Made by a program: the position numbers and the translations under genes
Notes under the pieces: generated by a model
What the model saw: only the letters and a program-made list of their open reading frames with translations
The model's database searches: none
Told to the model about the DNA's origin: nothing
In this document: positions 1,864-53,803 of the stretch, one piece after another
Layout: the number at the start of each line of letters is the position of its first letter
How positions within the stretch are numbered: the stretch's first letter is position 1
From: Hyaloraphidium curvatum SAG 235-1
Lineage: Eukaryota > Fungi > Monoblepharomycota
Direction: 5' to 3'
Assembly (NCBI GenBank): GCA_025558095.1
Contig: JAIVFI010000014.1
Span: forward strand, 62,001 to 126,000
Length of the DNA stretch: 64,000 bases

Positions 1864-2505
1864 ATGCAGTCCCCTCCGGAGAAACCCCGCGTGCGCGGCC
1901 CCATCCCCGCCAACACGCGGGTCGGGGCCGGGCGGAAGGAGGCCAATGTCGCGTTCAAGCTGGAGGTCCTCGCCGGAGCGGAGACGTCCCCCAGGCACCT
2001 CGAGGCCATGTTCGCGGTCTGCAGCGTCTGCAGCCTTGAAGAATTTCCGGGCAGCGAGCTCCACGCGGCGATAGACGATGCGTGCTGGGCTTGGGCCGAA
2101 AAGCAGCTCATCGCGCTCGGCCTGCGGTGCTTCGGATGCGGGGCCAGATTCCGGCCGGAAGTCGGGAACGTGGGACCCAGCTTCAGTTGGGTCCAGATCG
2201 GGAACGAGCCGGGTGTCGCGCTCGCGCTGTGCTCCATGTTGGCGATCGCGTGCGACGAACCGCTGGGTGCTTGCTTCGAAGCGGGCCGTCGCCACCTAAA
2301 CAAGCTGCACAAGGAGATTCCCATGGATCAGCCTTGCGTCTGCAAGAACCCAAAGTGCCGTGCGCGGGGGGGCAAGTGGGATGTCAAGCGCTGTTCGGGA
2401 TGCAAGATCGCGGAGTACTGTTCGCGCGAGTGCCAGAGGATCCACTGGCCCGCGCATCGCAGTTTGTGCCGGCGGGACGAGGGCACGGCAGAGGCGGCGT
2501 CGTAA
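1864..2505 (+). CDS. MYND-type zinc finger protein (type B, copy 1)
   Basis: C-terminal [34 protein letters not shown] is a canonical MYND finger. Full-length paralog of 26903-27540. Confidence 0.85.
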
Positions 2506-2661
2506 TTGTCCCGGAGGAAAGAGCTTTGTCATTTCTGATTCAATCAATTCGAATGAACGACACTCGAAGCAACAGAACTCCATGCTCCCAAGGCACCCGC
2601 GACTCGTGAGACATCCGCCCTCATCCAACCCTTGCCCGCAGATCACATCGACCCTGCCGCC

Positions 2662-4179
2662 TTACTCCATCCCGAAAAGGCACACCCCGATCCCCCTTTC
2701 GTCCACTTCCGTGCCCCCCATCACCGTCCGCCTGAACGCGCACCTCCTCGAATGATCCCTGTCCTCCAGGATCCCTTTCCCGTCCATCCCCTCCGCCGTC
2801 CCCTTGCCGCCGTCCTTCGGCAGGGCGAACCTCCCGGCGTGCAGCTCGCAGAACGCCGCGGTGCCGCATCCGCCGGGGCACATGAACAAAGGCGCCCAGC
2901 CGGGGTCGTAGTAGCACCCCGATTGCGCACACGAGAGGAGGGGGTGGAACTCGCTGGGAACGGAGTAGGCGACGGTCGCGGGCGGTGCCTGGGAGCCGTG
3001 CCGCGCGCGCCACATGGAGGCGACGTCGCGGTACGGGTGCCGCGCGAGGGGATCCGAGGGGTGCGGGTCGGTGCCGAAGGCCGCGCAGGCGTCGAGGAAA
3101 CCGGCGTCGGCGCGGTGCAGGGCGCCGTTGGGCATGCCGGCGTCGAGCACGGCGGCGCGGCGGACGAGGGCGAGGTTGGCAGGGGTGCGGAGGGAGGGGT
3201 GCGGGGCGAGGTCGAGGAGGGCGAGGGCGAGGAGGGAGCAGGCTTCCTTGGCGGGGGCGTAGCGGAGGTGCGTGGATCCGTGGGGCGCGTGGTCCTGGCC
3301 CTGGACGCCAGCGATCTCGAGCATGCTCCGCAGCAGCCTCAGCATCGCGTGCCCCGCTTCCTCGGTCATGTCGGCGTCGCAGGCCCGCACGACGATCTCG
3401 AGCAGCGCAGAGACGAGGATCTCGAGCCCCGCGCAGTCACAGGCCCCCAACACGGCCCCGGGCGCCTCCGCGGCCTGGTCCAACAGGTTGATGATGCCCG
3501 GCACGGCCTCGGGCCCGCACCAGACCAGGAAACCCCGGTAGACCCCGGCCAGCGCGTCGTCAAACAGCTTTTTCGCCTCGAACCTGCTCATCCTCGCGGC
3601 GAAGCGAGCGGCGGCCTCGGCGTGGAACCTTCCGCAGCCCAGCTTGACGAGCTGCACGGCGGCGTGCATGCCGGCTGCGTAGGCATCGGTGGCGTCGGGA
3701 TCGAGGGCGGGGATCGCGGGGTCGGTGGCCAGCAGCGCGAGGTGCGGGGCGTCGTGGAGGTCGAACTTCGCGCCGTTTGCGCGGTCCATTGCGGCGTCGG
3801 CGGCCGAAGTCCAGCCGGCGGCAAAGAGCGGGCCAAACTTCTCCCGGTACTTTGCGGCGACCGGCGCCACGGCCTTCTTGGCGTAGTCCGAGCGACGTTT
3901 GTCCTCCGCAGTCTTCGCCCGCTCCTCGTCCGCCGCCCACGCGCCGCACCGGTGCAGCTCCGCCGCGGCGCGCGCAAAAAGCTCCTTCTTCGATCCCGTT
4001 TTGTTGACACCGAGCGACGCGCAGAGCTCCTTCAGCGCGGGGAGCTTGAACTTGGCCAACTCCGCGGGGGACGGGCGGGCGTTGGGCGGGGCTGCGGACG
4101 CGCCGCCGCTCGCTTTGCTGGCCGAAGGAGCGGCGGAGCGCGCAGGTGGCACGTTTTCGACATCGCTCGCGGGAGGCAT
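2662..4179 (-). CDS. SAP-domain protein with a degenerate C-terminal MYND-like Cys/His cluster
   Basis: LAKFKLPALKELCASLGVNKTGSKKELFAR matches the SAP motif. C-terminus has CAQSGC..CPGGC..FCELH..HSRRC. 505-aa intronless ORF. Confidence 0.7.
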   Translation of the reverse strand: MPPASDVENVPPARSAAPSASKASGGASAAPPNARPSPAELAKFKLPALKELCASLGVNKTGSKKELFARAAAELHRCGAWAADEERAKTAEDKRRSDYAKKAVAPVAAKYREKFGPLFAAGWTSAADAAMDRANGAKFDLHDAPHLALLATDPAIPALDPDATDAYAAGMHAAVQLVKLGCGRFHAEAAARFAARMSRFEAKKLFDDALAGVYRGFLVWCGPEAVPGIINLLDQAAEAPGAVLGACDCAGLEILVSALLEIVVRACDADMTEEAGHAMLRLLRSMLEIAGVQGQDHAPHGSTHLRYAPAKEACSLLALALLDLAPHPSLRTPANLALVRRAAVLDAGMPNGALHRADAGFLDACAAFGTDPHPSDPLARHPYRDVASMWRARHGSQAPPATVAYSVPSEFHPLLSCAQSGCYYDPGWAPLFMCPGGCGTAAFCELHAGRFALPKDGGKGTAEGMDGKGILEDRDHSRRCAFRRTVMGGTEVDERGIGVCLFGME

Positions 4180-9268: not shown

Positions 9269-10162
9269 ATGGCTGCACCTGCTGAGCAGGACGAGCGGAC
9301 TCCGCTCGGCGGGCAGGCGGCCGAACCGGAGCAAAGGGAGACACCGCGCCGCAAGACAGCGTTCATTTCCGGCGCCGCGGGAGGGCTGGGACGCGCCACC
9401 GCCGAGCTGCTCGCGGCGAAAGGCTGGCGGGTGATCGCCGCGGACCGCGACGAGGCGGCGCTGTCCCGGCTGCGCGAACGCGTCGACGTCGACACTCTCG
9501 TCCTGGACGTCGCGGACCCGGCCAGCGTCCAGGCCGCCGCGGAGAAGCTCCGCGCTCTCTCCCCCGGCCTGGACGGCATCGTCAACTTTGCCGGCATCCT
9601 GGCCGTCGGCTCCGTGATCGAGCTGCCCGAGGAAACCCTGCGGCGCATCTTCGAGGTCAACGTGTTCGGGACGTACCGCGTTAACCGGGCGCTGTTCCCG
9701 CTCCTGCTCGAGCGCAAGGGCAGGATCGTCAACATCAGCTCCGAGACGGGGTGGCAGAGCGGGATGCCGTTCAACGGCGCGTACGCAATGACTAAGCACG
9801 CCGTCGAGGCCTACTCGGACTCGCTGCGGAGGGAGCTGCGGATCCTCGGCGTCAGGGTGGTCAAGATCCAGCCCGGTCCGTTCAGGACCGACATGACCGC
9901 GACCATAGGGCCGAATTTCGAGCGGGCTGCCGCGGAATCGCATTACTTCGGTTGCGTGCTGCGCCGCATGCTCCCCCGCGCGGTCGCCGCGGGCGGCAAC
10001 GGCAGCGACCCGCGGATCCTGGCCGAGGCCGTGCTCGAGGCGCTCACGGCGGAGAGCCCGGCGGCGGCCTACTCGGTGCGGCCGGCGTGGGACCGGACGG
10101 TGCTGGACTGGCTGCCCACGCGGCTCGCGGACCACATCCTGCACGAGGTGCTCAAGCTCTGA
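9269..10162 (+). CDS. Classical short-chain dehydrogenase/reductase (17-beta-HSD/RDH-like)
   Basis: SGAAGGLG nucleotide-binding motif, NFAG, catalytic YAMTK (YxxxK) and PGPFRT. Intronless. Confidence 0.92.
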   Translation: MAAPAEQDERTPLGGQAAEPEQRETPRRKTAFISGAAGGLGRATAELLAAKGWRVIAADRDEAALSRLRERVDVDTLVLDVADPASVQAAAEKLRALSPGLDGIVNFAGILAVGSVIELPEETLRRIFEVNVFGTYRVNRALFPLLLERKGRIVNISSETGWQSGMPFNGAYAMTKHAVEAYSDSLRRELRILGVRVVKIQPGPFRTDMTATIGPNFERAAAESHYFGCVLRRMLPRAVAAGGNGSDPRILAEAVLEALTAESPAAAYSVRPAWDRTVLDWLPTRLADHILHEVLKL

Positions 10163-10252
10163 GTGCCCGCCGAGCACGGCTCATCGAGTAATGCGTAAGA
10201 TCTATTCGCCCACACCGCGACCGCGCCCCCACCTGTCCGGTCCTCCGTGCCT

Positions 10253-12002
10253 TCAACCCCTGGTCCACACCTCGACCTCGTCCTGCCACCGGCTCCCGTA
10301 CCTGGGCACCCAATTGCCCGGCAGCCCTCCCGGCCCGCACCGCCTCCACCTCGCCCCGGTCGCCTCGGCCAGCGCCTCCACCAGGGGCCCCATGACCGGC
10401 CGCGGCTTCTTCTCGTCGGGGCCGCGAAACACCTCGTCGGGGATCCGCGCGACCGTGCGGAGCCCGGGGGCGTCGACGTCCGCCAGCGCCCGCTTCTCCG
10501 CCGGGCTCGGCCCGCCAGCGCGGACGCCCCAGAGTCCGAGCTCGCGGAGCTTCGGCCACGACCCCGAGGTGGAGAACGCGCCGGCGAGGACGGGGGGAAG
10601 GGGGGCCGAGGTCACCTTGAGGTCGTTCTTGCTCATGTAGATCGAATCGATGGTGATGTAGAGGCGTTCGAGGGTCTTGCCGGACGCCGCGTGGAACACC
10701 GAGATCAGGTCCCTGAAGTACTGGTTCCGCCCCGTGAGCGGCGGCGCGGCCGGGCCCGAGCCACACCCACCCCATCGATCGTTTCCTGCGAGTTGGGCGG
10801 TGTCGACGGCCGCGTGAAGGTGTAGTTTTCCCCCAGGAGCACGGAGATCACGAGCGTGCGGAGCCTCGGGATGGGTACGATGGGCGCGAGCGAGGCGTCG
10901 ACGGCGCGTTCCCTGCTCCGGTGCGTCTTGAGGCTCCCCAGCTTGAGCCGCTCGAGCTCCGGAAACCAAGTCCCGAGCTTTGCGATCTCCGAGATGTCGA
11001 GGTTCCTTTGTTCCGAAATGACTGGCCGGCATCAGTGTATGGCTACTGGCCGGAACCGGGACCGGCAGACCCACGCGAGAGCCCGGTGATCCTGGAGTAT
11101 CCCTGCGTCCCTCCAGGCCTCAGCTCCGCCCCGGCCCTCGAAATCCTGGCGATGAGCTCGTGCGACATGTCCGCGGACGCGACCTTGTAGTCCTCGAGGC
11201 CGGGATTGAGCTCCAGGACCTTGATCGCGGTCTCGGAGCCGACCTTGGAGTCGAGCCACATGCGGCGGAGGTTCGGCGCGTACGTCTTGGCAGCTTGGAG
11301 GACCGCATGGTCGCTGATTCCGTCCAGCTCGATGTCGACGACGTTGGGCGTGGCCGGGAACAGCCTTCCGGGGGAGCAACCGGTCAGCCAACCGCTTCGG
11401 AGCTCGCACACCAGTCCCACTTTTTGATGTCGTTGCTCGAGAGGCCGTCCATGGACCTGTAGCGCACCTGCCGCACGACGTTCGGATCCAGCGTGCGGTT
11501 GCAGCCGGGCTCGAGGCCAAAGAGCTTCTTGATCCCGGAGGTGGTGAACCCGCCCGAGGGCTTGTAGCCCGAGGCGGAGAAATCGCAGCGTTCCCAGAGC
11601 GTCGGTACCGTGAGCAGCTGGCGCCAGGCGCGGCACACGAGCGCGGCGGCGCGGAGCCTGTCCCGGAACGGAACCAGGGAGAAGACGAGCAGCTGGACCT
11701 CGTTGGGCAGGCCTGCAAAAGCGCCGACGGCCTCGTTGCGCAGATCGACTGCGACCACGTCGACGTTTTGCGGGACCAGCGCGCGGCGGTGCTCGGGCAG
11801 GGCGGCGCGCACGTCTGCGAGCGGGACGGCGCCGTCTCGGATGGCGCGCACAAGCAGCCGCTCGAGCTCCGTCCGCGACAGGCGGTTGACGAGCACCGTC
11901 GCGACCGCATCTTCGTCCCCCACTTCGGCGGCGGCGGCGGCTTTCTTCCGCGGGGCGCGGGCCTTCCTGGGCGGCGGGGCGTCGGAGTCGCCGCGCGCCA
12001 TG
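10253..12002 (-). CDS. F-box protein with LRR-like C-terminus (4 exons; introns ~11420-11365, ~11074-11022 and one near 10770-10720)
   Basis: FAGLPNEVQLLVFSLVPFRDRLRAAALVCRAWRQL is an F-box. Later segments PNLRRMWL, PELERLKL and PKLRELGL are LRR-like. Confidence 0.8.
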
Positions 12003-14522: not shown

Positions 14523-16061
14523 ATGGCGGAAACTCCCGAAGAAAAGGACGCGCAGCAGCCGCTCAGTGACCTCTTCAGCGCCGCGGAACTGCTCGCGCTG
14601 CTGCCGAGCGCGTCGGATTTGCAGCCTCCTTTGTCGCCCGACATCGCGCCGCTCGTCCCGGGGGAACGCGATCCGGCCGCTGATTTCCGCGCGGAGGACC
14701 CGATGACGCTGGAGCGCCTGCTCAAGGCCCTGGCGCCGCTCCGCGGGCTGCGGTTCCTGGCCGCCGCGCGCGGTTGGCCGCGGCTCAACCGGCTGCCTGT
14801 GTCGCGCACAGTTCTGTACATCCTGCCGGACACCGTCGCGGCACCGTACGCGACGTGGGAGCCCGCGCTGGCCTCGGGCGTGTTCGCCGTGCGGGGTGCC
14901 GCCGTCAGCGTGGCCGCGTTGGCCTTTGGGCGCTTGGTGTACCACCTCATCTTTCTCGTACAGCGCGTCCCGGCGTGGGGCCGGCCGCCGACGGAGGACA
15001 CGAGCCCATTCGCCGGTCTTGCGCGCTGGATCGAGCTTTCGGGGTGGGCGGGTTCAGATGGTGCGGACGCCGAAGCCGCATACAACGGAGGAGGCCGAAC
15101 GGCGCTGCGAGACCTGCTGGCGCACCACGACCACGACCTCTCGTGTCCGTGCAGGCGCTCGTCGTGCGCAGGCCGTCTTCCTCGGATGTCATCGACGATC
15201 CAGGTCGGGCGACAGGTGGTGCTAATGTTGATCCTCAGCCTAGTGCATTGGCTGTTGCCGTGGTGGACGCCAACTGTCTTCCTGGCCGACAGCATCTGGG
15301 TGGTGCCGTGGAAGGCGGTCATTTTCGGGTACCTACCCGTCATTTACTTCGTTCTGCACGTCTCCGTCTCTCTTGAAGGGATCTCCTCCGATGCCGCCCT
15401 GCTTGACCTGGACGGCAGGGTCGAGGCAAGAGCCATATCTTTGACGCTCTCTGAGGCTATCAAATCCATTCTTGTCGAGGAACAAGAGGGGAGGGAAACA
15501 GCATTGGATCCGCCCGAACTTTCTGGATCACCGAGCTCCCGCCAAAGCTTCATTGCATTGCACCAAATGCTGGCTCCCAAGTGGCGCGCGAGGGCCAAGA
15601 TGTGCCAAGAGTACAACTACGCCCGTGCCGTGGCCTTCGCATTCGACCTTGTCGTACTGCTCGTCCTGATGCTGGGTGCCGGCTGTGCGACCGCCTGGGC
15701 CATCGGCTCCATCGCCTCGCACGCCATCGAGATCATTTACGCCCTCTCTACCTTCGCCATGGGAAACACCAGCGTCGCCCGCAACACCTCCCTCTACGGC
15801 CGCGCGGCCTCTGGCGTGCGCCTCGCCTTCGCCGAGCGCCGCCGCGCGGTGCCACCCGACGCGGCCGCGCAGCTCGCCGCCCTCGAGGTATTTGCCCGCG
15901 CCGCAGACGACAACTATGCCAGGCTGTTCGGCGTGCCGGTGACGTTCGGGCTTGTGAGGGGGCTCAGCGTCACTCTGGTGACGATCAGCGTGGGCCTGGT
16001 GGGCATACTCAGGGGGGCGGGGGTACGTGCGACAATGCAGAGCTGGTGTCCGATCGAATAG
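14523..16061 (+). CDS. Multi-pass (~7 TM) membrane protein, gustatory-receptor-like/7TMIC candidate, copy 1
   Basis: 512-aa intronless ORF with about 7 hydrophobic segments, no signal peptide, and C-terminal ARLFGVPVTFGLVRGLSVTLVTISVGLVGILR. The CDS is secure; the family call is inference. Confidence 0.65.
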   Translation: MAETPEEKDAQQPLSDLFSAAELLALLPSASDLQPPLSPDIAPLVPGERDPAADFRAEDPMTLERLLKALAPLRGLRFLAAARGWPRLNRLPVSRTVLYILPDTVAAPYATWEPALASGVFAVRGAAVSVAALAFGRLVYHLIFLVQRVPAWGRPPTEDTSPFAGLARWIELSGWAGSDGADAEAAYNGGGRTALRDLLAHHDHDLSCPCRRSSCAGRLPRMSSTIQVGRQVVLMLILSLVHWLLPWWTPTVFLADSIWVVPWKAVIFGYLPVIYFVLHVSVSLEGISSDAALLDLDGRVEARAISLTLSEAIKSILVEEQEGRETALDPPELSGSPSSRQSFIALHQMLAPKWRARAKMCQEYNYARAVAFAFDLVVLLVLMLGAGCATAWAIGSIASHAIEIIYALSTFAMGNTSVARNTSLYGRAASGVRLAFAERRRAVPPDAAAQLAALEVFARAADDNYARLFGVPVTFGLVRGLSVTLVTISVGLVGILRGAGVRATMQSWCPIE

Positions 16062-16245
16062 TGGCATTGGAATCGGTATTTGGGCGATTGATAGACACGT
16101 CGGGTGTGGTCTTTTCGGCGCCGCCGAAGGTGAAACTGACCTGGCATGGGCTCCATCAGGAGATGGCGCACTCAGCTCCATCCACACCGGGGAGAGCTTG
16201 ACGTTTGGAAAGGCGAGCGGGACCTCAAAGTACGCACCTCTATAA

Positions 16246-17877
16246 ATGATGCCGAAATCCGGGGACTTCTCAGTAGAAGCCCTAGGATCCCTCCCGCACG
16301 CGTCATCCGCTATGGCTCTCCTCTCGCCGTCCGACTTTTTGCTTCTCTTTCCCGCGGAACCGCAGCGCGGCGCGCCCGGCGGCCTCGCCCCGCCTCCCGC
16401 AGACGACCCCGCCGCGCCACTGCGCGCGTCTGAGCCCGTGACGCCCTCCGCGATGCGCCGGGAATTCGCGCCGTACAAACTGCTCAGCGCCGTCCTCGCG
16501 GTGAACACCTTCTTTTTCCCGTGGCTGTCGCGATCCGGCGTGTGGCGTGGCGCGCTTTCTACCTCCTCCTGGGCCATGCTGCTGGCCGCCGTCATCGTCC
16601 TGAACGCGGAGTACTTCCACCTTTTCGAGCTCCGGCAGGTCATCGTCGGCTCCATCGCCGTCCTGTACCCCTGGATCATGGACGTGGCGACCTACGGCTT
16701 CCTCAAAGTTAGGGCGGCTCGGAGCGTGAAGCAGCCTTTCAAGGACATTCTTTCCCCCGGAAACGGGTACTCGGGACCGTCGCCGGACCAGGATGTTTCG
16801 GGCCACCTCTTTTCACCGCTCGTCAGGTGGCTCCAGGCCCTCCGCATTAACGGGGCCGGGCCCGGCGGGGATTCCGGGAAAGGAAGCAAGGCTGCCGGCG
16901 ATGCCTTCGACCCCGAGCAACCCTACGGCACCCACTCGGAGACATCACATCTCCTGCGACACACGGAAGGCGACCCCCTGTGCCCTTGCGCGACGTGTCT
17001 CGGCAACACGCCAACGCTGGCCGCCGTGCTCTGCCTCCTGGACCAATCCCTGTTCACTTTTTTCCCGTTTGTCGCGAGCGCGGCCCTAGGAACTTACACG
17101 CCCTTTGTCGCCTTCGGATCGCAGTTCTGGCTGCTGTGGTGGTGCAAGCTCATCGCCGGCATTTTCTTCCTGTTCCAGACCATGCACTGGATCCCCACGG
17201 GCTTCGGCATGCTGCCGACGGACAGCGTCGCCATGATCCGGCTCACCACCCGACTGCGGAACCGCGCCGTCACAGCTGCGCTCACCGCCCTGGTCGAGGA
17301 CCTCGAGCGGTGCCTGGACGGAAACACCCTTGCCGATCAGAAAGCCCGCGACTTGTACCTCGTGCTGCATTCGCACCTCCGCATTGCCTGGAAACAGCGT
17401 TTCTTGGCTTCCCGCGCGGCCCGCACCGGTTTCGTTCTGGGCGCCGCGAACCAACTCCTTGCGATCTTCCTCAACGTCGTCGCCTGTTCCTGCACCACCG
17501 CCATGCACCTCCTCTACCTCGCCAGCTTCGCCACCCGCGGCCTCGTCGTGAACCTGGCCAACTACGCCCACGCCAACGCCGAGATCGCCCTCGTCGCCTC
17601 GTCGTACCGCGTCGCGCACGTCCGGATCGCGGAGGCGGCCGCGCGCGCCGCGGACGCAGGCAGGGACGTGGCGCCGCTCAAGGGACACCTGCGCGCGCTG
17701 GAGGCGCTGGCGGGAGACGGCGCAGAGTACAGGGAGAAGGTGCTGGGGGTCGCCGTGGACGGGGGTTTCGCGAGGTCGCTCGTGCTGGGGGTTCTGACGC
17801 TCACGGTGGGGCTGTATTCGATCCTGAGGAGCGCGGGGGTGTCGGTGACCATGCAGGTGTTCTGTCCGTCGGGGTGA
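16246..17877 (+). CDS. Multi-pass (~7 TM) membrane protein, gustatory-receptor-like/7TMIC candidate, copy 2
   Basis: 543-aa intronless ORF, paralog of 14523-16061. C-terminal EKVLGVAVDGGFARSLVLGVLTLTVGLYSILRSAGVSVTMQVFCP. Confidence 0.65.
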   Translation: MMPKSGDFSVEALGSLPHASSAMALLSPSDFLLLFPAEPQRGAPGGLAPPPADDPAAPLRASEPVTPSAMRREFAPYKLLSAVLAVNTFFFPWLSRSGVWRGALSTSSWAMLLAAVIVLNAEYFHLFELRQVIVGSIAVLYPWIMDVATYGFLKVRAARSVKQPFKDILSPGNGYSGPSPDQDVSGHLFSPLVRWLQALRINGAGPGGDSGKGSKAAGDAFDPEQPYGTHSETSHLLRHTEGDPLCPCATCLGNTPTLAAVLCLLDQSLFTFFPFVASAALGTYTPFVAFGSQFWLLWWCKLIAGIFFLFQTMHWIPTGFGMLPTDSVAMIRLTTRLRNRAVTAALTALVEDLERCLDGNTLADQKARDLYLVLHSHLRIAWKQRFLASRAARTGFVLGAANQLLAIFLNVVACSCTTAMHLLYLASFATRGLVVNLANYAHANAEIALVASSYRVAHVRIAEAAARAADAGRDVAPLKGHLRALEALAGDGAEYREKVLGVAVDGGFARSLVLGVLTLTVGLYSILRSAGVSVTMQVFCPSG

Positions 17878-18255
17878 GATCTCTGGCGAATCAAAATTTT
17901 GCGCAGGACTCGGCTGTCCGAGACCGAGCGATCCCGGGCCCCGAGCTCCAGTTGTCCGTCGACGTTGTAGGTCCAGTCTGCTGATCAAATGGGCGGGGAG
18001 GCTTTGCTGACGGAGGGACCCGGAAAGAAGATCGCACGCCAGCGTGCGACAGACGGACCCCTCAATGGCATCGTCGGTAGAAAAAGCTTCTGATCAGAGA
18101 GACTCCGGCCTTCTTTTCGCCGATGCTTGTTCTCGCGGGTTCAGCACGGAACGGATCGAGCGATCGCCGTTCACTCCGCGGCGGCTCCAACATACTGCCC
18201 TTGCCTCCCGCTGTTGCCACACCCTCCCCCAGTCGCCCTCCCGCCCGCCGCCACG

Positions 18256-19768
18256 ATGGCGTTCAACGCCACCGCCGCCTCGCCGGCGCTCCTCGACCCG
18301 CCGCTGCACGCGCTCGCCTCGGCGGCGGAGACGCTGCTGCCCGCGGCCGTCCTCGCTCTGGCCGTCAACGGCTCCGCGCTGTACGCCGCCCACGAGACGC
18401 CGTTCAAGTTCGCGCACTTCCAGGGCCCCATACTCAGGAAGCTCGGCGTGCCGCAGGAGTACGTCGACAAGATCTGGGACTTCCCGCCGTGGTTCCGGGA
18501 GGCCTGGACGGCGAACATCGAATGGGCCGTGCGCACCATCGCGTCGTTCCTGCTGCCGTCGGTGTTCGGCGAGGCGACCCGCATGTGGCTGGCCGAGGGG
18601 CTCTTCTACTCGTACGTCATGAAGGTGGTCTTCATCGTCGTGTTCTTCCCGCAGTTCCTCTTCTACCGCGGGTGGGTTGTTCGCCCTTCTATCGCCATCG
18701 GGAGGTCCGCGCTGACTCGGATCTCTTTCCGGCCGGCAGAGCCGACCACTACGGCTACCTGGACCGGTGGAAGACCAACCCGTACCGCGAGAACCCCGAC
18801 AAGGAGACCGAGGCCAAGTACTGGAACGGCCTCTGGCCCTCGGTCCTCTACTCCTTCCCCACCGAGACCTTCATCCTTTGGGCCATCAATTTCGGCCGCG
18901 GGGAGATGGCGCTCTCGGTGCTGCCCTCGTTCGCGGACGTCATGTGCAAGCTGCTGTTCGACCTCTGGCTGGCCGACACGATGTACTTCTGGATGCACTG
19001 GTGGGAGCACCAGCCGGGAATCTACCAGGTTTGTGGTGTGCCGTCGATCGATGGGCGTCGTCGCTGATGGCGTTGTGAGCGCAGAAGGTCCACAAGGCGC
19101 ACCACCAGATCCGGTGGCTCAACGGTGGGTCCCAACCCCTCCCTCCTACCCCTGCGAACCTCTTACACATCCCTGCACCCCCAGTCTATGGATTCTTCTA
19201 TCAGAACAACATAGAACGCTACATGCTCCGCTTCAACTCCTTCGTCGGCAACATGATCATCGCCCACACCTTCGGCCACGACCTCATGACGGCGATCCTG
19301 TCGTCGGCCTTCTTCATCAGCAGCGACATCCACAGTGAGTTTTTCTTCCTGTTTGGCGTTCCGCGGCCCCTGACCTCGTCCTGCAGTCCACACGGGCTAC
19401 ACGGTGCCGTGGATCCCGATGAACTGGATCAACCCGCAGTACTTCCACGACTGTGAGCCACGCCCGCCACGCTCTCCCTCCCCTCGCCATCTTCTCACCG
19501 CCTTCCCCGCCCGCCAGTCCACCACTCCCAGAACCGCGGCAACTACTCCGCCTTCTTCAACATCCCGCCGTTCTCGTGGGACTGGTGGATGGGCACCGAC
19601 AAGAACTGGCGGCGCTTCCGCAAGGCCGGCGGCGAGGTGCGGCTGCACCGCAACACGTGGCCCGGGTTCTACGTCGAGGGGGATCTCGACATCGCGAAGA
19701 AGCAGGCGGCGGAGCAGGCGAAGGAGGACGATGCGGCGGTGGTCGACGGGAAGGGGAAGGACGATTAG
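18256..19768 (+). CDS. Fatty acid hydroxylase/sterol desaturase superfamily protein (Erg3/Erg25-like; ~6 exons)
   Basis: Histidine boxes HWWEH, HKAHH, DIHIHTGY and FHDFHH after splicing, plus NYS..WDWWMGT. Confidence 0.88.
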
Positions 19769-20007
19769 GCGCGCGCGTTGTGTTGCAAGTGCGGTGTAGG
19801 AAGCGCGGGGCGGTATAGTGTCTCGGGGATCATAGAGTCACTCGTTGTCTGTTTTTGGTGACGCGTCCACATAAGGCGGCGTCTGTTCGTAACTACTCTC
19901 TGTAACTCAAGCAATAATCCGCAAAGATCGTATCTACAGACACAGATGTGGAATCAAACTCATGAGCGTCCGAAAAAAGGCGACGACCGGGAAGGCGGGG
20001 CCATCGA

Positions 20008-20712
20008 TCAAAAGTCCAGCGCCCTGCGCAGCTCCTCGCTCCACTCCACCATGCGCTCCACGTCCTTGGCCTCCTTGCGGCTCCACACGGTGGTGAAGGT
20101 GGGCACGAGCCTGCGCCCGGCGTCGTTGGTGAAGTGCACCGCGGACTTTGTCACCCGCAGGGCGGCATCAAGGGGGCCGGCGGCCTCTCCTTCCTGATCT
20201 TGCTGCTGGGCATTGTCGGATTCGCAGGCCTCCTCGCCCCGCGTGTCGCTCGACGATGCGGTGCTGTTCCGCGGGCGGGATTCGTCCGGGGCGTGGTACG
20301 GGCCCATGCTCCACACGTCCTCCTCCTCGGCCCCCTCTGTATCCGACGGCGCGGCCTCGTCGCCCCCGTGCGCGGTCTCGTCGTCGCCGTCGGAGCAGTC
20401 CTCGGCGTGGGGGACTGCGCCTACCAGGGACGTCAGCGCGCCCGCCCACAGCGAGTCGACGGGGATCAGCGCGGCGGCGTCCCCGTCTGCGTACGTCTCC
20501 CGCGGCAGATCGACCGGCCAGAAGAGCGGCTCTGCGGGGAACAGCGCGGCGGCGGAGGGCGACTCGGCCACGGCGAGGGGGATCGGGAGGTGCGGCGGCG
20601 CGTCGTCGGGGCCCGCGGGGCGCCGCCGCCGCTGCCGCGCCCGCCTGAGCCAGTCGCCCACAGCGCGGCGCATCGCTTTGAGGCGGCGGGAGAAGCTCGC
20701 GAGGGGCGCCAT
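20008..20712 (-). CDS. Hypothetical protein (basic N-terminus, acidic disordered centre, conserved C-terminal motif)
   Basis: 234-aa ORF. Its C-terminal RRLVPTFTTVWSRKEAKDVERMVEWSE is shared with the neighbouring gene. Confidence 0.6.
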   Translation of the reverse strand: MAPLASFSRRLKAMRRAVGDWLRRARQRRRRPAGPDDAPPHLPIPLAVAESPSAAALFPAEPLFWPVDLPRETYADGDAAALIPVDSLWAGALTSLVGAVPHAEDCSDGDDETAHGGDEAAPSDTEGAEEEDVWSMGPYHAPDESRPRNSTASSSDTRGEEACESDNAQQQDQEGEAAGPLDAALRVTKSAVHFTNDAGRRLVPTFTTVWSRKEAKDVERMVEWSEELRRALDF

Positions 20713-21656: not shown

Positions 21657-22180
21657 CGCGGGATGGGGTCGGCTGGACCGCCGACGGTTGGCTGGTGGCG
21701 AACTCTCGGGAAGCGGGAAGCGCTGACGGCGATGACGGGTCGTGAGCGGGCGGATACGTAGCAAGTCAATGGTGTGAAGACAGTTTCAAAGGAAGAAAGG
21801 ATGGCTGGACGTCTTTCTTGCTCGTTCGAGGGGGCGGCGAGGCGGAATCAGTGTCGACCGACACTGCAGAGTTGCAGAACTCGGCCCCTCAAGGAGGCCG
21901 ACTTCCAAGCTGCCTGACCCCGGCTACATTCGAGCTTAGGACGAGCACGTTTGTTCATCAAATCTGGAGCTCAACGCAAGTAGAGGAAGCAGGCGCCTGG
22001 TGGGCGCCTGGCGTCCGATGTCCCGATCGTCGTCAACGGGACCGCCGTCCCGGCAGCACAAACATCGCCATCGCGGGGTTCCGCGGGCTTGTCCCGCCTC
22101 TGCGGCGCCTAGCGTGAGCGCAGCGTTGATTCTTTTGCTTCCGCCGCGGGCCCGTGCGGCGGCGCCGACGTGCCGCCGCA

Positions 22181-25100
22181 ATGCACCGCGGCGCGGGCGG
22201 CGGAGCCTCCGGCGGCAAACCGACGCCCTTCTCGTCGCTCAACACCTTCCAGCGCGGCGCCGCGCCCCCTCCCGGCACCCGCGGCATCGCAACCTCCGCG
22301 CACCGCCGCAAGCACCGGCCCGCCGACGGCGGCAGCGACGGCGACGTCGACTTCGCGGGCATCGACGACGACGCGCTGTGGGCCCTGCAGCCGCCCGAGC
22401 CGCACGAGCGATCGCCGCACGCGTCGCCAAGCAAGCGTGCGAGGCCCATGGTCGACCCCGATTCGCCCTTCATCGCCCGCAACATCTACACCGACGCCGG
22501 GGCACCCCAGAACGACCTCCCGCGGAAGACCGGCGCTGATGCCGCGGGCCCGGCATCTTCGGTCGGCGCGCCGGCCGCACCCGCCGGCAGCTTCCTGTCT
22601 CCTCTCCTTCGCACGCCCATCCAGCAGCTAGAAAGGCTGCAGGTCGACCCCGCACCCCTATCGGCCGCCGACCCCCGCGGCTCCCCCGATGCCGCCGACG
22701 GGCCCTACTCCACCTGCCCCGGATCCCCTGCCACCCCGACCTCGGCCCGCACGCTTGTTGCTCAGCCGCCCGGGACCCCACCCTGCACCTCCCCGACCGC
22801 CAGCCCGACGCAACACACGACGCTGTCGTCGCCGTGCCGTACCTTCGGGCTGCGCGTTCCCAAGCTGGCCACGGAAACCGAGGCCAGGCTGCTCGCTTCC
22901 CCCTCGGGATGGCTGAGGACCTTCGAGGTGCTCCGGCACGTCTCCCCGTCGGGGCCGGTGGCCCCTGACTTGGTCGACGGGGATCCCGCGCTTGTCGCGG
23001 AGCTCTGCTCGTGCCCTCCGAACCACATCGTCTCCATCCTCGATTCCCGCCGCATCGACGCGGACTGCCGGGCCTCTCCCCTCACCCCCGCCCCATCGGA
23101 CGCCTTCGACCCTCCCCCGGACCACGTGATCACCTTCTCGGTCCTCGTCTCGCGCAAAATCTCCGACACCGCCAACCTCCTCGTCTCCCTGCTTCACCCC
23201 TCGGCGGAGCTCCCCACCCGCCTCGAGGCCGAATGGGGCGCCGACGCGGTGCTCTGCCTCTCGCTGGACGAGGGTTCCATCGGCCGCGCCAAGCTGGCGA
23301 TGGTGAAGCCGTCCCTGCGCCGCATCACCATCGCGGGGCGGGAGTTCGGCTTCCTTGTGGCCAAGAAGGACAAGCGGCAGGGCGAGCGGGCATACCTGGT
23401 CCGGCTGCCCGAGGGCACCGGCCCCGAGGACGCCCTGGCGCGGCTGGTCCCCCCGATCCTGGCCAACCACCACATGTCCCTGCCCAAGTACCTCGCCCGC
23501 CTGACCCTGGGCCTCTCCCGCACGCGGCGGTTATCCATCCCGGGCCTCAAGATCAGGGTCGTCGACGATGCGGGGGACGGTCCCCACGTGCTCACGGACG
23601 GGTGCGGGCTCGCGTCGCCGGACGTGCTGCGGCTCGCGCACCCCGATCGCGCCGAGCACCGTGCGCGGGTGCCCTGCGCGGTGCAGGTGCGGATCGGAGG
23701 GGCAAAGGGGATGCTGCTCGAGGCGGCCTGGCTGGAGGAGAGGACGGTGGTGCTGAGGAAGTCGATGGTCAAGTACCTTTACCCCGGCGGCGGGCCGGCG
23801 GGGGAGGGGGAGCACGCGGTGCTGGAGGTGGTCAGGTTCGCGGACGAGGGGTCTGCGTACCTGAATGCGGAGTTTGTTCAGGTGCTGGCGGGGTTGGGGG
23901 TGGCCAAGGAGACTTTTGTTGAGCTGGAGGTGGGATGACTTGGGACGACCGCTCCAGCGTTCGCTAAATGCCCCCATTTGCAGCACGAGGCTGCATCCGA
24001 GACCCTCTCGCACCTCTTCCCCGACCCGCCCGAGCCCCTCAAAACGGCGCGCTTCCTCTTCCGCAGCCTCACCCAGGTGTACGACGACTCGGGCGACCTC
24101 TTCCCCGGCGAGATCCTCCTCCGCCTCATCCTCGCCGGCTTCGACCCCAATGCCGAGCCCTGGGCCCGCGCCAAGCTCGCCGCCTTCGCCCGCTGGGAGG
24201 GCGAGCGGCGCCGCGCGCGAGCCCGCATCCTCGTTGCAAAGGGTGCGTCGGCGATCGCGGTGCCGGACCCGCTGGGCGTGCTGGCGCCGGGGGAGATGTA
24301 CTTCCGCGGCGAAGGCGGGGAGGTGCTCCGCGGGGACGTGCTTTGCATGCGGAACCCGTGCCATCTTCCTTCGGACGTGCAGGTGTACGGGGCGGTGCAC
24401 AAGCCGGAGCTGGCGGGGTACCACAACGTGTGCGTATTTTCTACCGCCGGGCCGGGGCCGGGGATGGCGGCCAGGCTGAGCGGGGGGGACTACGACGGGG
24501 ACGTGGTGACGATGATCTGGGACGACCGCCTCGTGGGCCAGGTGCGGCGGGATCTCTGCGGCGTGCCTGCGGAGCTCCCGGGCGTCGCAGCTGCTTTTGA
24601 GCGCACACCGCCGCCCACCGTCGGCGAGGTGCTCGCATCCGAGGGCATGGAGGGCCTGGCGCAGCGCGCTTGGAAGGCCTACGTGGGCGGCGAGGAGGAC
24701 ATGCTGGGAATGTACACGCGGTGGCACGCGATGGTTGCGGAGCACGAGGGCGTGGCGAGCGAGCGCGCGGTAGAGCTCGCGCAGATGTGCCAGCGGTGAG
24801 CCAGATTGGGTCGAGATCGTTCATCTGCTCACCTGCTTGCGGCTCTGCAGGCTCGTGGACGCGCCCAAGACGGGCGATCGGCTTCTGCCCGAGGCGGAGC
24901 AGCGGCACAGGATGTTTGCCGAGCCCTTGCCCAAGCTCTTCTGGTGGGACCTGCGGCAGGCGAGCAAGTCCAAGGGCAAGACGCCCTCCCGACCCGCCGC
25001 CGCCGTACCGGGCCCGACATCCTTCCTGCACGACCTCGCGGCGGGGCTGGTCCCCATGCCGCCGCTCTTTAAGGAGCGGATGGACGAGCTGCTTCTGCGC

Positions 25101-36749: not shown

Positions 36750-38910
36750 ATGGTCGCCGCACTCTCGCGCCCCGAGCTCTCCGCCGCCGACGACGCGACC
36801 ATCGACGATGCCGTGCAGCACGCCGATCCTATGGTCCTCCGCGGCCTGCTCTACCAGCTGACGGCCGACCCCGACGTCGAGAACACCAAGACTCGCACGA
36901 TGTTTGCGCTGTACAACAACATCGAGGTCGTCGAGGACAAGGACGTCCCGCTGCTCCGCGAGAAGGCCGCCGCGTACCTCAAGAAGCTCCGCGACTCGGG
37001 CACCCCCGAGGTCGACATCGGCCCGCGCGAGCGCCTGCCGAGGAGCCTCGAGCTGCTCCTGGGCCGCGAGCTCAAGGGCGAGTTCCTGCAGCACCACCTG
37101 GACGAGCTCGCCCTGGACCCCGAAGTGCGGGCGCTGCACTGGAAGGAGGAGCCGGATCCGGCCAGGCTGAAGGAGTTCAACGTCGTTGTAGTCGGCTCGG
37201 GGATGGGAGGACTGAACGCGATGATCCAGCTGCGCAAGGCGGGGTTCCCGTTCACGGTGCTTGAGAAGAACGACAAGTGGGTATCATCTCCGCATGTGCT
37301 TCTTGCCGAGCTTTGCTGATCTTGTCTTGGCCTTTCTTGTTTTTGTAGCGTGGGCGGGACATGGTACGAGAACCGCTACCCGGGAGCCCGCGTCGACACT
37401 CCGAGCCGGTCCTACACCCACGTCTTCGGCGTCGACTTCCCCTACCCGAACCCGTTCTGCGGGTGGACCGAGAACGTCAAATAGTGGGCGTCTGTTGCGC
37501 AGGCGATGCCGAGCTTTGGTGACCCCGCCGTTCCCGCCACTTTTCGCCAGCTTCAACTGGGTTGCGGACAAGTACGACCTTCGCAAGCACGTGCAGTTCA
37601 ACACCGAGGTCAAGAAGCTCGTGTGGGACGACAACACGGACCAATGGGTGATCGACGCCGTCGGCCCCGAGGGCCCGATCAAGCTGCGCGCGCGCGCCGT
37701 GATCACCTCGGTCGGCTTCCTCAACCGCCCCAACATGCCCGAGATCCCCGGCATGGAGACCTTTGCCGGCCGGTCGTGGCACACGGCCAGGTGGCCCAAG
37801 GACTTTGACCACGCGGGCAAGAAGATGATTGTGATCGGGACCGGGGCTACTGGCTACCAGCTGATTCCCGAGGTCGCCCTCACGGCCGCCAAGCTCACGG
37901 TGTTCCAGCGCACGCCGCAGTGGCTGCTCCCCACGCCGGGGTACCGCTCCCCCTTCCCGCCCCAGGTCAACTGGCTCGACCGCAACATGCCCTTCCACAC
38001 CAACTTCATGCGCGCCAAGGAGGCGACCCTGGACGCCCTGTACCACATCTCCGAGATCGACCCCAACTTTGAGGACGAGCACGCGGTGAACCCACTCGGC
38101 AAGCAGGCCCGCGAGAACTGCATCGCCTTCCTCGAGAAGAAGCTCGGCGACCCGGAGCTCGTCAAGAAGATGACCCCCGCGCACCCGATCTGGTCTGCGC
38201 GCGGCGTCGTGGTTGACTCGGAGTACAGCGTCGCGGACGCCATCAAGCGCGACAACGTGGAGCTGGTCACGTGCGGGATCGACCGGATCGTGCCCGAGGG
38301 CGTCGTGGACAAGGACGGCGTGATGCACGACGCCGACGCCATCGTCTACGCCACCGGGTTCCACGCCACGGAATGTGAGAGCTCGCCGCGGATCGCATTC
38401 CTGAGGTCCCGAGCTGACCGCACTTCGGCACCTCGCTGTTTCTCCTCAGACCTCTACCCCATGACCATCATCGGCCGCAACGGGCAGAAGCTCGAGGATC
38501 TGTGGAAGAAGGAGGGCGCGAGGGCGTATCTGGGCTGCATGGTCTACGGGTTCCCCAACCTCTGGAGCATCTACGGGCCCAACACCAACGGCGGCCTCCA
38601 GGTGGCCACGTTCCACGAGAGGACGGCCCAGTACGCGCTGCAGTGCATGGAGGAGCTGGTGCGCACCGGAGCCCGCTCGATGGAGGTCAAGCCCGAGGCG
38701 TTCTGGAGGTACAACAGGCTCGTGGATGCTCGGAACAAGAAGAAGTGCTGGTCGGACAAGCGTGCATCAAAGGGCCAGAACTACTACCATAGCAAAATCG
38801 ACGGGGACTGGGATTCCGGGAGGTCGGCGGTCATGTGCCCGTTCAACACGGAGGAGATGTCGGGTTTCCTGCGCAAGCCGGACTTCAACGACATGGAGAT
38901 TGTCGCCTAG
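36750..38910 (+). CDS. Type I Baeyer-Villiger monooxygenase, 4-hydroxyacetophenone monooxygenase-like (introns 37277-37348, 37484-37550, 38375-38449)
   Basis: GSGMGG, GGTWYENRYPGARVD, BVMO fingerprint FAGRSWHTARWP, GTGATG, ATGF and YGPNT, plus the long N-terminal extension characteristic of HAPMO. Confidence 0.92.
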
Positions 38911-51668: not shown

Positions 51669-53592
51669 CTACCGGAAATGCCCGAACGTGCCTTCGTCGT
51701 CCTCTTCATCGTCCTCCAGGCCCTCGACTTGTGTTGGGGATTCAGAATCGCCGTCCACGGCGCCCACCGTTTCAATGGCGCGGCTTCCATTGGGCTCTTC
51801 AGCGCCCGTCCACGCCGTTTTCTGTTCCGTCTCTGCCTCGGAATCAGACTCCTCGTCATCCGCAGCAGCCGCAATGCTCCTCCGCCTGGCAGGCATCGTC
51901 TTCCTCGGCGAGCTGGTTGGCGAAGCGCCACCGAAGGCTTGCTCCCATCCCCAGGTCCTGGCGTCCTTTCCCTCGTCCGGGCAGACGCACGGAACCGGCC
52001 AGTCTCCCGCCCGCAGCCGCACTTCGTCGCCTGGCCAAAGTGGCACCCGCTTGCGCGAGTCGAAGCTGGCCCAGGCCGGCGCACGCGCTTCTTTGGGCAC
52101 AATGAGCCGCAAATCGGCCACCTCCGGCAGGATAAAGGGCCGGAGGGTGAGTTCGTGCGGCGCGATGGGCGTGCAGAGGATCCCGCCGACGTCCGGGTGG
52201 ACGATGGAGCCTCCAGCAGAGAGGGAGTAGGCCGTGGAACCCGTTGGTGTGGCGATCACGATGCCGTCCGCCTGGATGAGGGTGCTGCGCTCCGACAAGT
52301 CCTCCGTGGAGACGCGAAGTTCGAGCAGGGAAAGGTAAGGGCTGGGTCCGCGGTCAATGATGAGCTCGTTGAGGATGTGGTAGGTGGTGCCGCTGTCGTC
52401 CTGGGAGTCTCTCGCTTGCAGCAAGCCGGCAGAGTACGAGGCCTTGGAGACCGAGCGCGGCGGCGGGGCGGTGCCGTCTGCTCCAGAAGAAGAGCTCGCG
52501 CCGCTGGAACCCAGCGGCGGTATCATCCCCGGGATTCCCCGCTTGAACATCTCCAAGGTGTCTCCGCAGCGAACGATGGTGCAAGCGAAGCGAGTGCGGA
52601 ACAGGATCCGGTAGCCCGAATTCTTCTGCACATCGCGGCATGCCAACGACAGCTTCCGATCCCCGATGCTCAGCTTTTCCGGCGGCGCCTGCGCGAGGCC
52701 AAAGATCCGCGTCAAGGTGGCCTGGTAGTTCCTCCAGAGGTGCGTGGCGATGACGCCGTGCGAGCGGCCACCCAGTCCCACCCCTTCCGTTTTGTTCTTG
52801 CTGACGTCGGTCCGGAAGGCGAGCATGGGCGGCATTTCGCCCTGGAAGGCCCAGGCAGCGCGGAGGGCCGTACCGTCTCCGCCGATGCTTACGAGAAGAT
52901 CGGCAGGCGCGGAAAGAAGAGGAAGAATAGGCTGCGAAGTCGGGAAAGGGAGAATGCTCGCGTGGCTACCGTCCGGCAAGAGGTGCGTAACATGAGGGTA
53001 GAGAGTCGATGGTACGTGGCTAGAAGCGGTTGCTCGGTGAGTCCGAAGGCAGTGTCGGGGCCATCGAGCCTTACATGTCGACGTCCTTGATGTGTCCGAT
53101 CAACCAAATGACTAAGTCGCTGACCTGTCCCATGTTCCGAAGCCCGGCGACGACCACGACGCGCTTCCGACCTCCGGCACCCTCGTTCAGGTCCACCTCC
53201 GCCATCTTGATCTCCCTCGCGATCTCGCGGAGCTCCAGCTGGGTATGCGAGAGTGAGACGGATGTCGACGGCCGCCTGTCCACCGGCGGCGTCATGGAAA
53301 GGGCCGTGAGGGCGAGCTGCGAGAAGGGGTCCTCGTTCGACGACGTGGTCCTGGACCGCACGTGCGGCCCCGTGAAAAAGTCCCGGGCTCCATCGCGCTC
53401 GCCGACGTTCGGGCTCAACGATTCCAACCGCTTGAGCAGCGATTCGGAGGATACGAGCGACGAGGAGTTGGTGCGGTTTCGGCCGAGGGAGAGGGAGTTG
53501 AGGGAAAGGGGGGCGGAACTCGCGGGGACGCGAGACGCGGCCTGCGACGCGTCTCCCGGCGTCTCCGTTGGAGTAGGAGCGTCCGATTCCAT
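51669..53592 (-). CDS. NAD(H) kinase (intron 53074-53020)
   Basis: GGDGT, ILNE, ADGIVIATPTGSTAYSLSAGG and TPIAPHELTLRP. Confidence 0.92.
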
Positions 53593-53803
53593 TTCCAGAT
53601 GTCTAACGCCGCCTCATGTGGGTTTGAAGATCCCCCTCGGCACTCTGAGGACCGAATCGGCTCCAAGGGATCTCGCGCCGCCACCGCCGATGGAGCCACG
53701 GAGTCTCGTCAGCTCCCTCGGGCGGTCGAAGGACTGCTTGTTAGGTCGAGAAGAACGTAGTATAGGGCGTGTTTCCGGGGGATTCGGTGGCTCAGAGGGT
53801 TCG

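Follow-up and report, generated by a model that had tools for sequence, protein, structure and literature searches.

The seven-transmembrane ion channels (7TMICs) include the insect odorant and gustatory receptors (ORs and GRs), the animal gustatory-receptor-like proteins (GRLs), and the plant DUF3537 proteins, and the known families lie in the twilight zone of sequence similarity, at about 15% identity (Himmel et al. 2023). Plants carry 4-12 GRL/DUF3537 genes, plant and protist families have 1-12 members, and the sole fungal members have been one GRL in each of two Spizellomyces species (Benton et al. 2020); in a 7TMIC survey that reports members from Chytridiomycota and Blastocladiomycota, "Fungi" refers only to these two groups (Himmel et al. 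2023). Two adjacent genes, p1 and p2, are considered here from Hyaloraphidium curvatum SAG 235-1, an atypical non-flagellated fungus that has been placed in Monoblepharidomycota (PMC8371127). They lie in the window, that is, the whole stretch of 64,000 nucleotides that was analysed (contig C14:62001-126000 of a genome of 31.9 Mb in 55 contigs, with about 65% G+C). An original prediction, made from the DNA alone, had proposed that the pair encodes receptor-like 7TMICs in a fungus. The host is indeed a fungus, and predicted structures support the assignment of p1 and p2 to the 7TMIC superfamily fold. The two genes are as follows:

14523-16061, plus strand: gene p1, an intronless and intact open reading frame (ORF) of 512 aa, a member of the Hyaloraphidium family with the predicted 7TMIC fold
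16246-17877, plus strand: gene p2, an intronless and intact ORF of 543 aa, a divergent paralog of p1

The two ORFs, whose coordinates were confirmed, are separated by 184 bp, lie on the same strand, and contain no stops. BLASTP aligns their products at 27% identity across 378 aa (E 4e-26), so that the description of the pair as adjacent, co-oriented, and very divergent paralogs holds; by sequence comparison, p1 and p2 are true yet distant paralogs. By a Kyte-Doolittle scan, p1 and p2 have seven hydrophobic segments apiece, and neither begins with a segment that resembles a signal peptide, in agreement with what had been expected.

Structures were predicted with AlphaFold2 without templates and from paralog alignments only. 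The model of p1, built from 125 sequences, has a pLDDT of 91.2 and a pTM of 0.91, and that of p2, built from 34, has a pLDDT of 85.9 and a pTM of 0.86. When these models were compared with the PDB by Foldseek, there was no match at E<=1e-3 for p1 or p2. Insect GRs and ORs alone fill the top 12 rows for p1 and the top 6 rows for p2 (Gr43a, BmGr9, AgamOR28, Gr64a, AaegOR10, and Orco/OR5; probability up to 0.93, E 0.03-0.8). The folds of ABC exporters, MATE proteins, and complex I were considered and rejected (Foldseek TM-score 0.1-0.17, probability <=0.25). An independent method, VIA-align, was run against 48,161 representative solved chains, and here too the best eight chains for p1 are all ORs or GRs, with 293-342 residues aligned, 81-92% of the chain covered, and a root-mean-square deviation (rmsd) of 4.9-6.4 A. 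Their Z scores are 12.4 for AaegOR10, MhOR5, and ApisOR5, 11.1 for BmGr9 and AgamOR28, 10.9 for Gr43a, 10.6 for Orco, and 9.0 for Gr64a. The next rows (Z <=8.8) are helical bundles of the syntaxin, STAT, and MSP1 types, which align over 142-231 residues and mostly on the cytosolic bundle. For p2, seven OR/GR chains are found in the top 20 (Z 9.2-11.9), and these are the sole matches of more than 300 residues. Finally, a shape search of the ESM Atlas with p2 returned the following (TM-score by query, then by match):

unnamed cnidarian cluster: 0.49 and 0.64, over 347 residues
plant DUF3537 cluster: 0.51 and 0.61, over 362 residues
unnamed echinoderm cluster: 0.45 and 0.56, over 339 residues
chlorophyte membrane protein: 0.52 and 0.33, over 399 residues

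Thus, insect ORs and GRs (Orco, MhOR5, AaegOR10, AgamOR28, BmGr9, and DmGr43a/Gr64a), which are Class-A ligand-gated cation channels, are the only full-length structural matches among the solved chains, and plant DUF3537 (PF12056) is the best named structural match to p2 in the ESM Atlas. Each of the findings that would have counted against the original prediction was looked for in some form, and none turned up; in particular, no GPCR, MFS, or bestrophin match emerged from the predicted structures. What lends this evidence weight is its specificity, in that the three methods and the two libraries point the same way and no full-length match lies outside the 7TMICs. The 7TMIC assignment stands by predicted fold and fails by sequence, where the hidden Markov models (HMMs) of DUF3537 and 7tm_7 give no match. 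Consequently, p1 and p2 are not filed in Pfam 7tm_7, 7tm_6, or DUF3537, and the claim made for them is one at the level of superfamily and fold only.

The anatomy of the models can be followed helix by helix. The boundaries below are those given by DSSP for the AlphaFold2 models, with transmembrane segments abbreviated as TM and the first intracellular loop as IL1:

TM0-like helix: residues 74-82 of p1, 78-96 of p2
TM1: residues 92-117 of p1, 98-124 of p2
TM2: residues 123-146 of p1, 129-160 of p2
IL1: residues 147-218 of p1, 161-254 of p2
TM3: residues 219-244 of p1, 255-281 of p2
TM4, kinked: residues 262-321 of p1 (262-285 and 291-321), 298-357 of p2 (298-321 and 328-357)
TM5: residues 339-386 of p1, 370-414 of p2
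TM6: residues 391-438 of p1, 419-470 of p2
TM7a: residues 445-464 of p1, 476-495 of p2
TM7b: residues 475-498 of p1, 506-529 of p2

On the DNA, the long-helix bundle and the split last helix occupy the following positions:

15306-15836, plus strand: TM4-TM6 bundle of p1 (residues 262-438), long helices that extend into the predicted cytosol in the manner of an anchor domain, with conserved C388 and N415
17137-17655, plus strand: TM4-TM6 bundle of p2 (residues 298-470), long helices as in p1, with C416 and N444
15855-16058, plus strand: split last helix of p1, consisting of TM7a, linker, TM7b, and a tail with C509-P, as judged by DSSP and conservation
17671-17874, plus strand: split last helix of p2, consisting of TM7a, linker, TM7b, and a tail with C540-P, as judged by DSSP and conservation

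In both models, a TM0-like helix precedes TM1, and it is there that the structural alignments begin. TM4, TM5, and TM6 are 45-60 residues long and run past the membrane into the predicted cytosol; the long extensions that had been noted after TM4 and TM6 are thus seen as helices, and they are enriched in Lys and Arg. The TM4-TM6 bundle alone matches four-helix bundles such as syntaxin Habc. The outside loops have only 4-16 residues: in p2, the extracellular loops EL1, EL2, and EL3 have 4, 16, and 4, respectively, versus 94 for IL1, and p1 is alike. Once the N-terminal 60-75 residues and IL1 are subtracted, a core of about 370 residues is left, the same size as that of an insect OR or GR. The TM0-like helix followed by seven TMs, the predicted outside C-terminus, the short outer loops, the long TM4-TM6, and the split TM7a/7b are shared with the insect receptors. 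Likewise, the features by which 7TMICs are recognized (Himmel et al. 2023; Butterwick et al. 2018), i.e., seven TMs with OR-like packing, an N-in/C-out arrangement, short outer loops, long TM4-TM6, and a split TM7, are predicted for p1 and p2, and all six of the architectural hallmarks listed for 7TMICs (Himmel et al. 2023) are present in the models or compatible with them.

The orientation in the membrane has been deduced from the charges of 125 family members. The fraction of Lys plus Arg is 0.029 in EL2, 0.016 in EL3, and 0.027 in the C-terminal tail. The values rise to 0.165 in the cytosolic part of TM4, 0.107 in that of TM5, 0.130 in that of TM6, and 0.166 in the linker between TM7a and TM7b. 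By the positive-inside rule, this bias places the C-terminus outside and, in line with the order of the helices, IL1 inside; a C-out topology is therefore well supported by the sequences, and the charge bias does not point to the N-out topology that would have spoken against the proposal. An N-in topology follows from the helix count only if the TM0-like helix does not cross the membrane. With this extra N-terminal helix set apart, the number of TMs is seven, as had been proposed.

Conservation across the same 125 members is highest in EL3, a stretch of 4 residues (0.68), followed by TM7b (0.59), the TM7a-TM7b linker (0.56), and the C-terminal tail (0.51). It is lowest in TM1-TM3 (0.24-0.28), and the helices other than TM7b span 0.24-0.41. 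Hence the idea that the last helix is the most conserved part is correct insofar as TM7b is, in this alignment, the best conserved helix of the family, and incorrect insofar as the tiny EL3 scores higher. In 7TMICs generally, a conserved pore and anchor are combined with a variable N-terminal half (Himmel et al. 2023), and the profile of this family, with its peak at TM7b and its low values in TM1-TM3, matches that pattern. The last-helix motif that had been described, [RK]-h-h-G-h-x-h-[TD]-x-G-h-x-R...GL..ILR, is present in both proteins and recurs in other members of the family.

The conserved Cys columns of the family number exactly five among the 125 members, and they fall into two groups. 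The first forms part of a His/Cys3 motif, which is located as follows:

15123-15167, plus strand: His/Cys3 motif of p1, H201-x6-C208-x-C210-x4-C215, in the predicted intracellular TM2-TM3 loop (IL1)
16960-16998, plus strand: His/Cys3 motif of p2, H239-x6-C246-x-C248-x2-C251, in IL1, with invariant columns

H201, C208, C210, and C215 (p1 numbering) are invariant in 125/125 members, and the motif is probably a metal site, with zinc as the likely candidate. The second group consists of C388 in the TM5-TM6 loop, which is kept in 124/125 members, and C509 of the C-terminal Cys-Pro, which is kept in 121/125; the sole member without C388 is also without C509. In both models, the TM5-TM6 loop and the tail are predicted to form short strands (residues 388-390 and 502-504 of p1), and C388 and C509 probably form a disulfide that would staple the tail to EL3 outside the cell. 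The A-x-x-N motif that had been said to close TM6 is found as FAMGN in p1 (A412..N415) and as YAHAN in p2 (A441..N444). Its Asn (N415), at the predicted cytosolic end of the helix, is kept in 124/125 members. An N-terminal motif of the EWLALLP type is nearly invariant across the family. The outside Cys pair, together with some 60-75 extra N-terminal residues that bear this motif, distinguishes the Hyaloraphidium proteins from insect ORs and GRs.

Searches of the H. curvatum genome with p1 or p2 find 87-88 places each. These counts are lower bounds, given that about 80 of 658-684 first-look candidates were scored per query. When the two lists were compared by eye, about 32 loci were shared, giving at least about 130 distinct loci on nearly all contigs. 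Internal stops were found at seven places in total, six in one list and one in the other; more than 90% of the loci have none. A profile made from an alignment of 34 members (median pairwise identity 30%, range 22-61%) was scored against 1.84 billion representative proteins (clusters). At E<=1e-3 it matches 467 of them, of which 419 remain at E<=1e-10 and 292 at E<=1e-30, and among the best 150 of the 467, many are 100% identical to ORFs cut from the H. curvatum genome. Of 20 matches that were looked up, 17 are single-member clusters of H. curvatum, named "hypothetical protein DFJ74DRAFT_...", 2 come from a Logan assembly of run SRR26194948, and 1 is from a JGI metagenome; the second ten were picked partly for odd amino-acid composition, and the 17:3 split thus overstates the foreign share. 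The family has several hundred members and, judging from the best 150 of the 467 matches, has been seen so far only in the Hyaloraphidium lineage. The earlier characterization of the family as lineage-expanded is strongly borne out by these numbers.

In the SRR26194948 contigs, the G+C content is 54%, an enolase gene is spliced, and a PC-esterase is 77% identical to an H. curvatum protein, with plants next at 27-30%. Family members occupy 10001-11569 and 2163-3800 of two contigs, and a further contig also carries the family. These proteins have the same His/Cys, Asn, and C-terminal Cys-Pro motifs and are about 30% identical to the sampled H. curvatum copies. The organism is a relative of Hyaloraphidium, and the family is therefore older than H. 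curvatum itself.

In a FastTree phylogeny of 125 members, p1 falls in a clade of five members that is well supported, with the other copies on C6, C30, C5, and C15, and its best identity within the clade is 62%; p2 forms a long isolated branch. The notion that p1 and p2 are recent tandem duplicates is rejected on account of this separate placement, and the proposal of tandem duplication finds no support for this pair. Further adjacent, co-oriented pairs of members exist, e.g., on C39, C22, and C6. The family has in common with the insect receptors both the peak of helix conservation at TM7b and a large, fast-diverging, partly clustered repertoire. The host is a fungus, in contrast to the animal hosts of insect ORs and GRs. 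GRLs are already known from zoosporic-lineage fungi, but those of Spizellomyces are single-copy per species, versus several hundred copies in Hyaloraphidium. No report on Hyaloraphidium together with gustatory receptors was found in the literature that was searched, and the titles and abstracts of the 7TMIC papers listed there from 2023 on describe no fungal expansion. Within a superfamily that is already known, the family represents a new form, strongly divergent and hugely expanded, and not a new kind of protein.

Evidence for expression comes from run X1, which is labelled RNA by guess only. The label is backed by the gene downstream of p2, where an X1 contig of depth 1240 lacks five GT..AG introns of 52-68 nt. 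The positions spliced out in X1 are as follows:

18671-18738: first intron of the downstream gene
19026-19081: second intron
19124-19183: third intron
19335-19386: fourth intron
19453-19517: fifth intron

Because these introns have been removed, and there are zero base differences, X1 behaves as RNA of the same organism. In X1, p1 is represented by unspliced contigs at 14864-15820 (depth 10) and 15872-16038, and p2 by unspliced contigs at 16387-17584 (depth 21) and 17731-17895; there is no coverage on the intergenic bins 16173-16369 and 17946-18339. The X1 contigs give neither strand nor transcript ends, and some carry-over of DNA is possible, but the pattern supports transcription of p1 and p2 at a low level as intronless units. 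It also bears out the view of the pair as intronless, next to a gene that is spliced five times.

Several observations of lesser reach concern the same region. One X1 contig matches the window from 14574 on, within the N-terminal coding part of p1, with 255 unrelated letters ahead; it could be a chimera, an alternative 5' end, or a paralog. In a DNA run, X2, of low depth (about 5-7x), single-base indels relative to the window occur at 16293, 17871, 18049, and 19989. Two of them fall in p2, one at codon 16 and the other two codons ahead of the stop. These could be contig errors or strain differences; wherever X1 contigs cover the window, they agree with it. A look-up of p1 and p2 as exact ORFs in the protein collection found neither. 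p1 may be represented by the cluster of its 62%-identical paralog, and p2 appears to be unannotated or differently modelled in the public gene models.

Taken together, these results have led to the following model, which is considered probable, though by no means secure: p1 and p2, both intact, free of introns, and apparently transcribed, belong to a family with several hundred members, and this family has the 7TMIC fold and functions as an extensive set of sensory channels gated by ligands. If the solved insect receptors are taken as a guide, the subunits would form tetramers through an anchor bundle of TM4-TM6 and TM7a, and the highly conserved TM7b would line a central cation pore. This pore would be gated from a ligand pocket that lies in the outer, variable half of TM1-TM4 and TM6, and the repertoire of several hundred copies would serve chemical sensing. 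In addition, the His-Cys-Cys-Cys of IL1 may hold a metal (zinc), and the Cys pair may staple the C-terminal tail to the TM5-TM6 loop outside. The analysis itself shows that the genes are intact and paralogous, how large the family is at least, that an RNA-like run covers both genes, and that the models are confident, match the fold, and agree with the topology bias; that the proteins form tetramers, act as channels, are gated by ligands, and serve chemosensation is what we infer.

It should be noted that a number of findings weigh against this model. At E<=10, Pfam has nothing for p1, p2, or any of the 34 aligned members, 7tm_6 (PF02949) included, and the profile finds nothing among PDB sequences, not even an OR or GR chain. 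The HMMs of DUF3537 (PF12056) and 7tm_7 (PF08395) have no matches in the whole genome, which is a point of difference from DUF3537 proteins and GRLs, and the motif of GR TM7 (TY...QF) is absent from the family. The Hyaloraphidium proteins have no detectable sequence similarity to insect ORs and GRs, no Pfam 7tm_6/7tm_7 match, and no TY..QF motif; furthermore, their IL1, at 70-95 residues with the invariant His/Cys3, is much longer. The structural comparisons reach only moderate values (Z 9-12.4, rmsd 5-6 A, Foldseek E 0.03-1, TM-score by query 0.25-0.5), VIA-align itself warns that helical proteins with no relationship can give Z scores below about 13, and AlphaFold2 may be biased toward folds already seen. 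Lastly, transcript depth is low for p1 and p2, at about 10-21 versus 1240 at the neighboring gene. A word-index protein search returned nothing for p2 and one H. curvatum fragment for the alignment, but composition swamps this index, so the blanks weigh little. Given that a sequence-level link was not found, homology between the family and the 7TMICs is a matter on which we can only infer.

The main competitor, which is unlikely but must be taken seriously, accepts the fold and the ancestry and denies the chemoreceptor role. In this alternative, the proteins would either belong to the PHTF-like Class-B 7TMICs or act at internal membranes as channels or scaffolds, their role would lie in housekeeping, development, or self/non-self recognition, and the expansion of the family would have had some cause other than the sensing of external chemicals. 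In PHTF-like proteins, the core fold is the same and the first intracellular loop is enlarged (Himmel, Moi and Benton 2023); the IL1 of p1 and p2, with 72-94 residues, is longer than in ORs and GRs, which may be cited for this alternative. It is, however, far shorter than "long" need imply. There is no Pfam match to PHTF among the 34 members and no PHTF structure among the matches listed; rather, the best solved matches are Class-A ORs and GRs, and the Atlas match is DUF3537. The biology of the host may also be cited for such a role, in that H. curvatum has been reported to be without a flagellum (PMC8371127), and a chemotactic use is not obvious. Moreover, the extracellular loops are conserved rather than variable, and a demonstrated ligand for a 7TMIC outside insects is absent from the cited 7TMIC papers. 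Against this, several hundred intact copies at about 30% identity, with TM1-TM3 variable and TM7b conserved, are the pattern of a receptor repertoire and not of housekeeping proteins.

A second alternative, regarded as rather improbable, is convergence: a lineage-specific family of helical membrane proteins may have arrived at an OR/GR-like arrangement without homology to the 7TMICs, in which case a channel role is not required. The lack of detectable sequence similarity to any known family (Pfam, PDB sequences, and the DUF3537/7tm_7 HMMs) counts in its favor, as do Z scores below the caution line of about 13 for helical proteins and an rmsd of 5-6 A. Recognition is likewise low in a language-model search of the atlas, where unnamed ciliate clusters and one of TMEM39 (0.93) come ahead of DUF3537 (rank 23, 0.89). 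An identity as TMEM39 was set aside, being unsupported by Pfam and by the structural search of the atlas. However, the known 7TMIC families are themselves only about 15% identical (Himmel et al. 2023). In addition, three structural methods and two libraries converge on the 7TMIC superfamily, with every full-length match a 7TMIC, and the core is of equal size (about 370 residues) and has an equal order of helices, with the six hallmarks present or compatible. The last possibility, a decaying or selfish multicopy element made of retroposed intronless copies without cellular function, has been largely refuted and is hardly credible: it would account for intronless copies scattered over nearly all contigs of an intron-rich genome, for the few copies with internal stops (six plus one places), and for the absence of the exact p1 and p2 ORFs from the protein collection, but an uninterrupted full-length frame is retained at over 90% of about 130 loci even though identities are about 30%, the motifs are invariant in 125/125 members, coevolution is strong enough for a pLDDT of 91, X1 covers p1 and p2, related genes are kept in a second species, and Pfam finds no transposon domain in the 34 members.

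The surroundings of the pair are those of a eukaryotic genome. A bacterial origin of the window was rejected in view of spliced introns, an RNA-dependent RNA polymerase of the QDE-1 type, and eukaryotic small-subunit (SSU) rRNA genes (SSU_rRNA_eukarya). Features outside the pair are as follows:

window 18450-20300: very highly expressed downstream gene, with its start near 18123
window 22154-23935: RNA-dependent RNA polymerase of the QDE-1 type (PF05183, E 5.5e-34)
window 37261-38907: flavin-monooxygenase-like ORF (PF00743)
window 53030-54751: alpha/beta-hydrolase ORF (PF12697)
contig C1, 34318-36115, 81263-83060, 112954-114751, 180912-182709, and 260152-261949: five full-length SSU rRNA genes on a single strand

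The ORF pieces of the downstream gene have no match in Pfam, and the majority of the remaining long ORFs of the window are also without a Pfam match. The SSU rRNA genes on C1 are spaced 32-79 kb apart rather than in the close tandem array (about 10 kb) that is usual, and this points to either an unusual arrangement of the rDNA or an effect of the assembly.

Returning to the sensory-channel model, a bolder version may be put forward, tentatively and with less than even confidence: H. curvatum has about 400 divergent, intact, expressed ligand-gated 7TMICs with a cytosolic His/Cys3 zinc module, which arose in parallel to the insect receptors from the same ancient fold and serve either chemosensation or self/non-self recognition. 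If this is true, then a non-motile planktonic fungus with a 32-Mb genome would possess a very large non-animal 7TMIC repertoire. Up to now, 7TMICs have been known as a huge chemoreceptor repertoire only in animals, and massive expansion would then not be special to animals. Structure-based screens that are tied to UniProt or the AlphaFold DB may have missed the largest non-animal family. The His/Cys3 zinc module would be new to the superfamily, going by the cited 7TMIC papers, and together with the outside Cys pair, it offers a testable structural addition. It would also have to be asked what a non-motile fungus senses with such channels. A unicellular, culturable system with hundreds of natural variants could then be used to study gating and the choice of ligands in these proteins.

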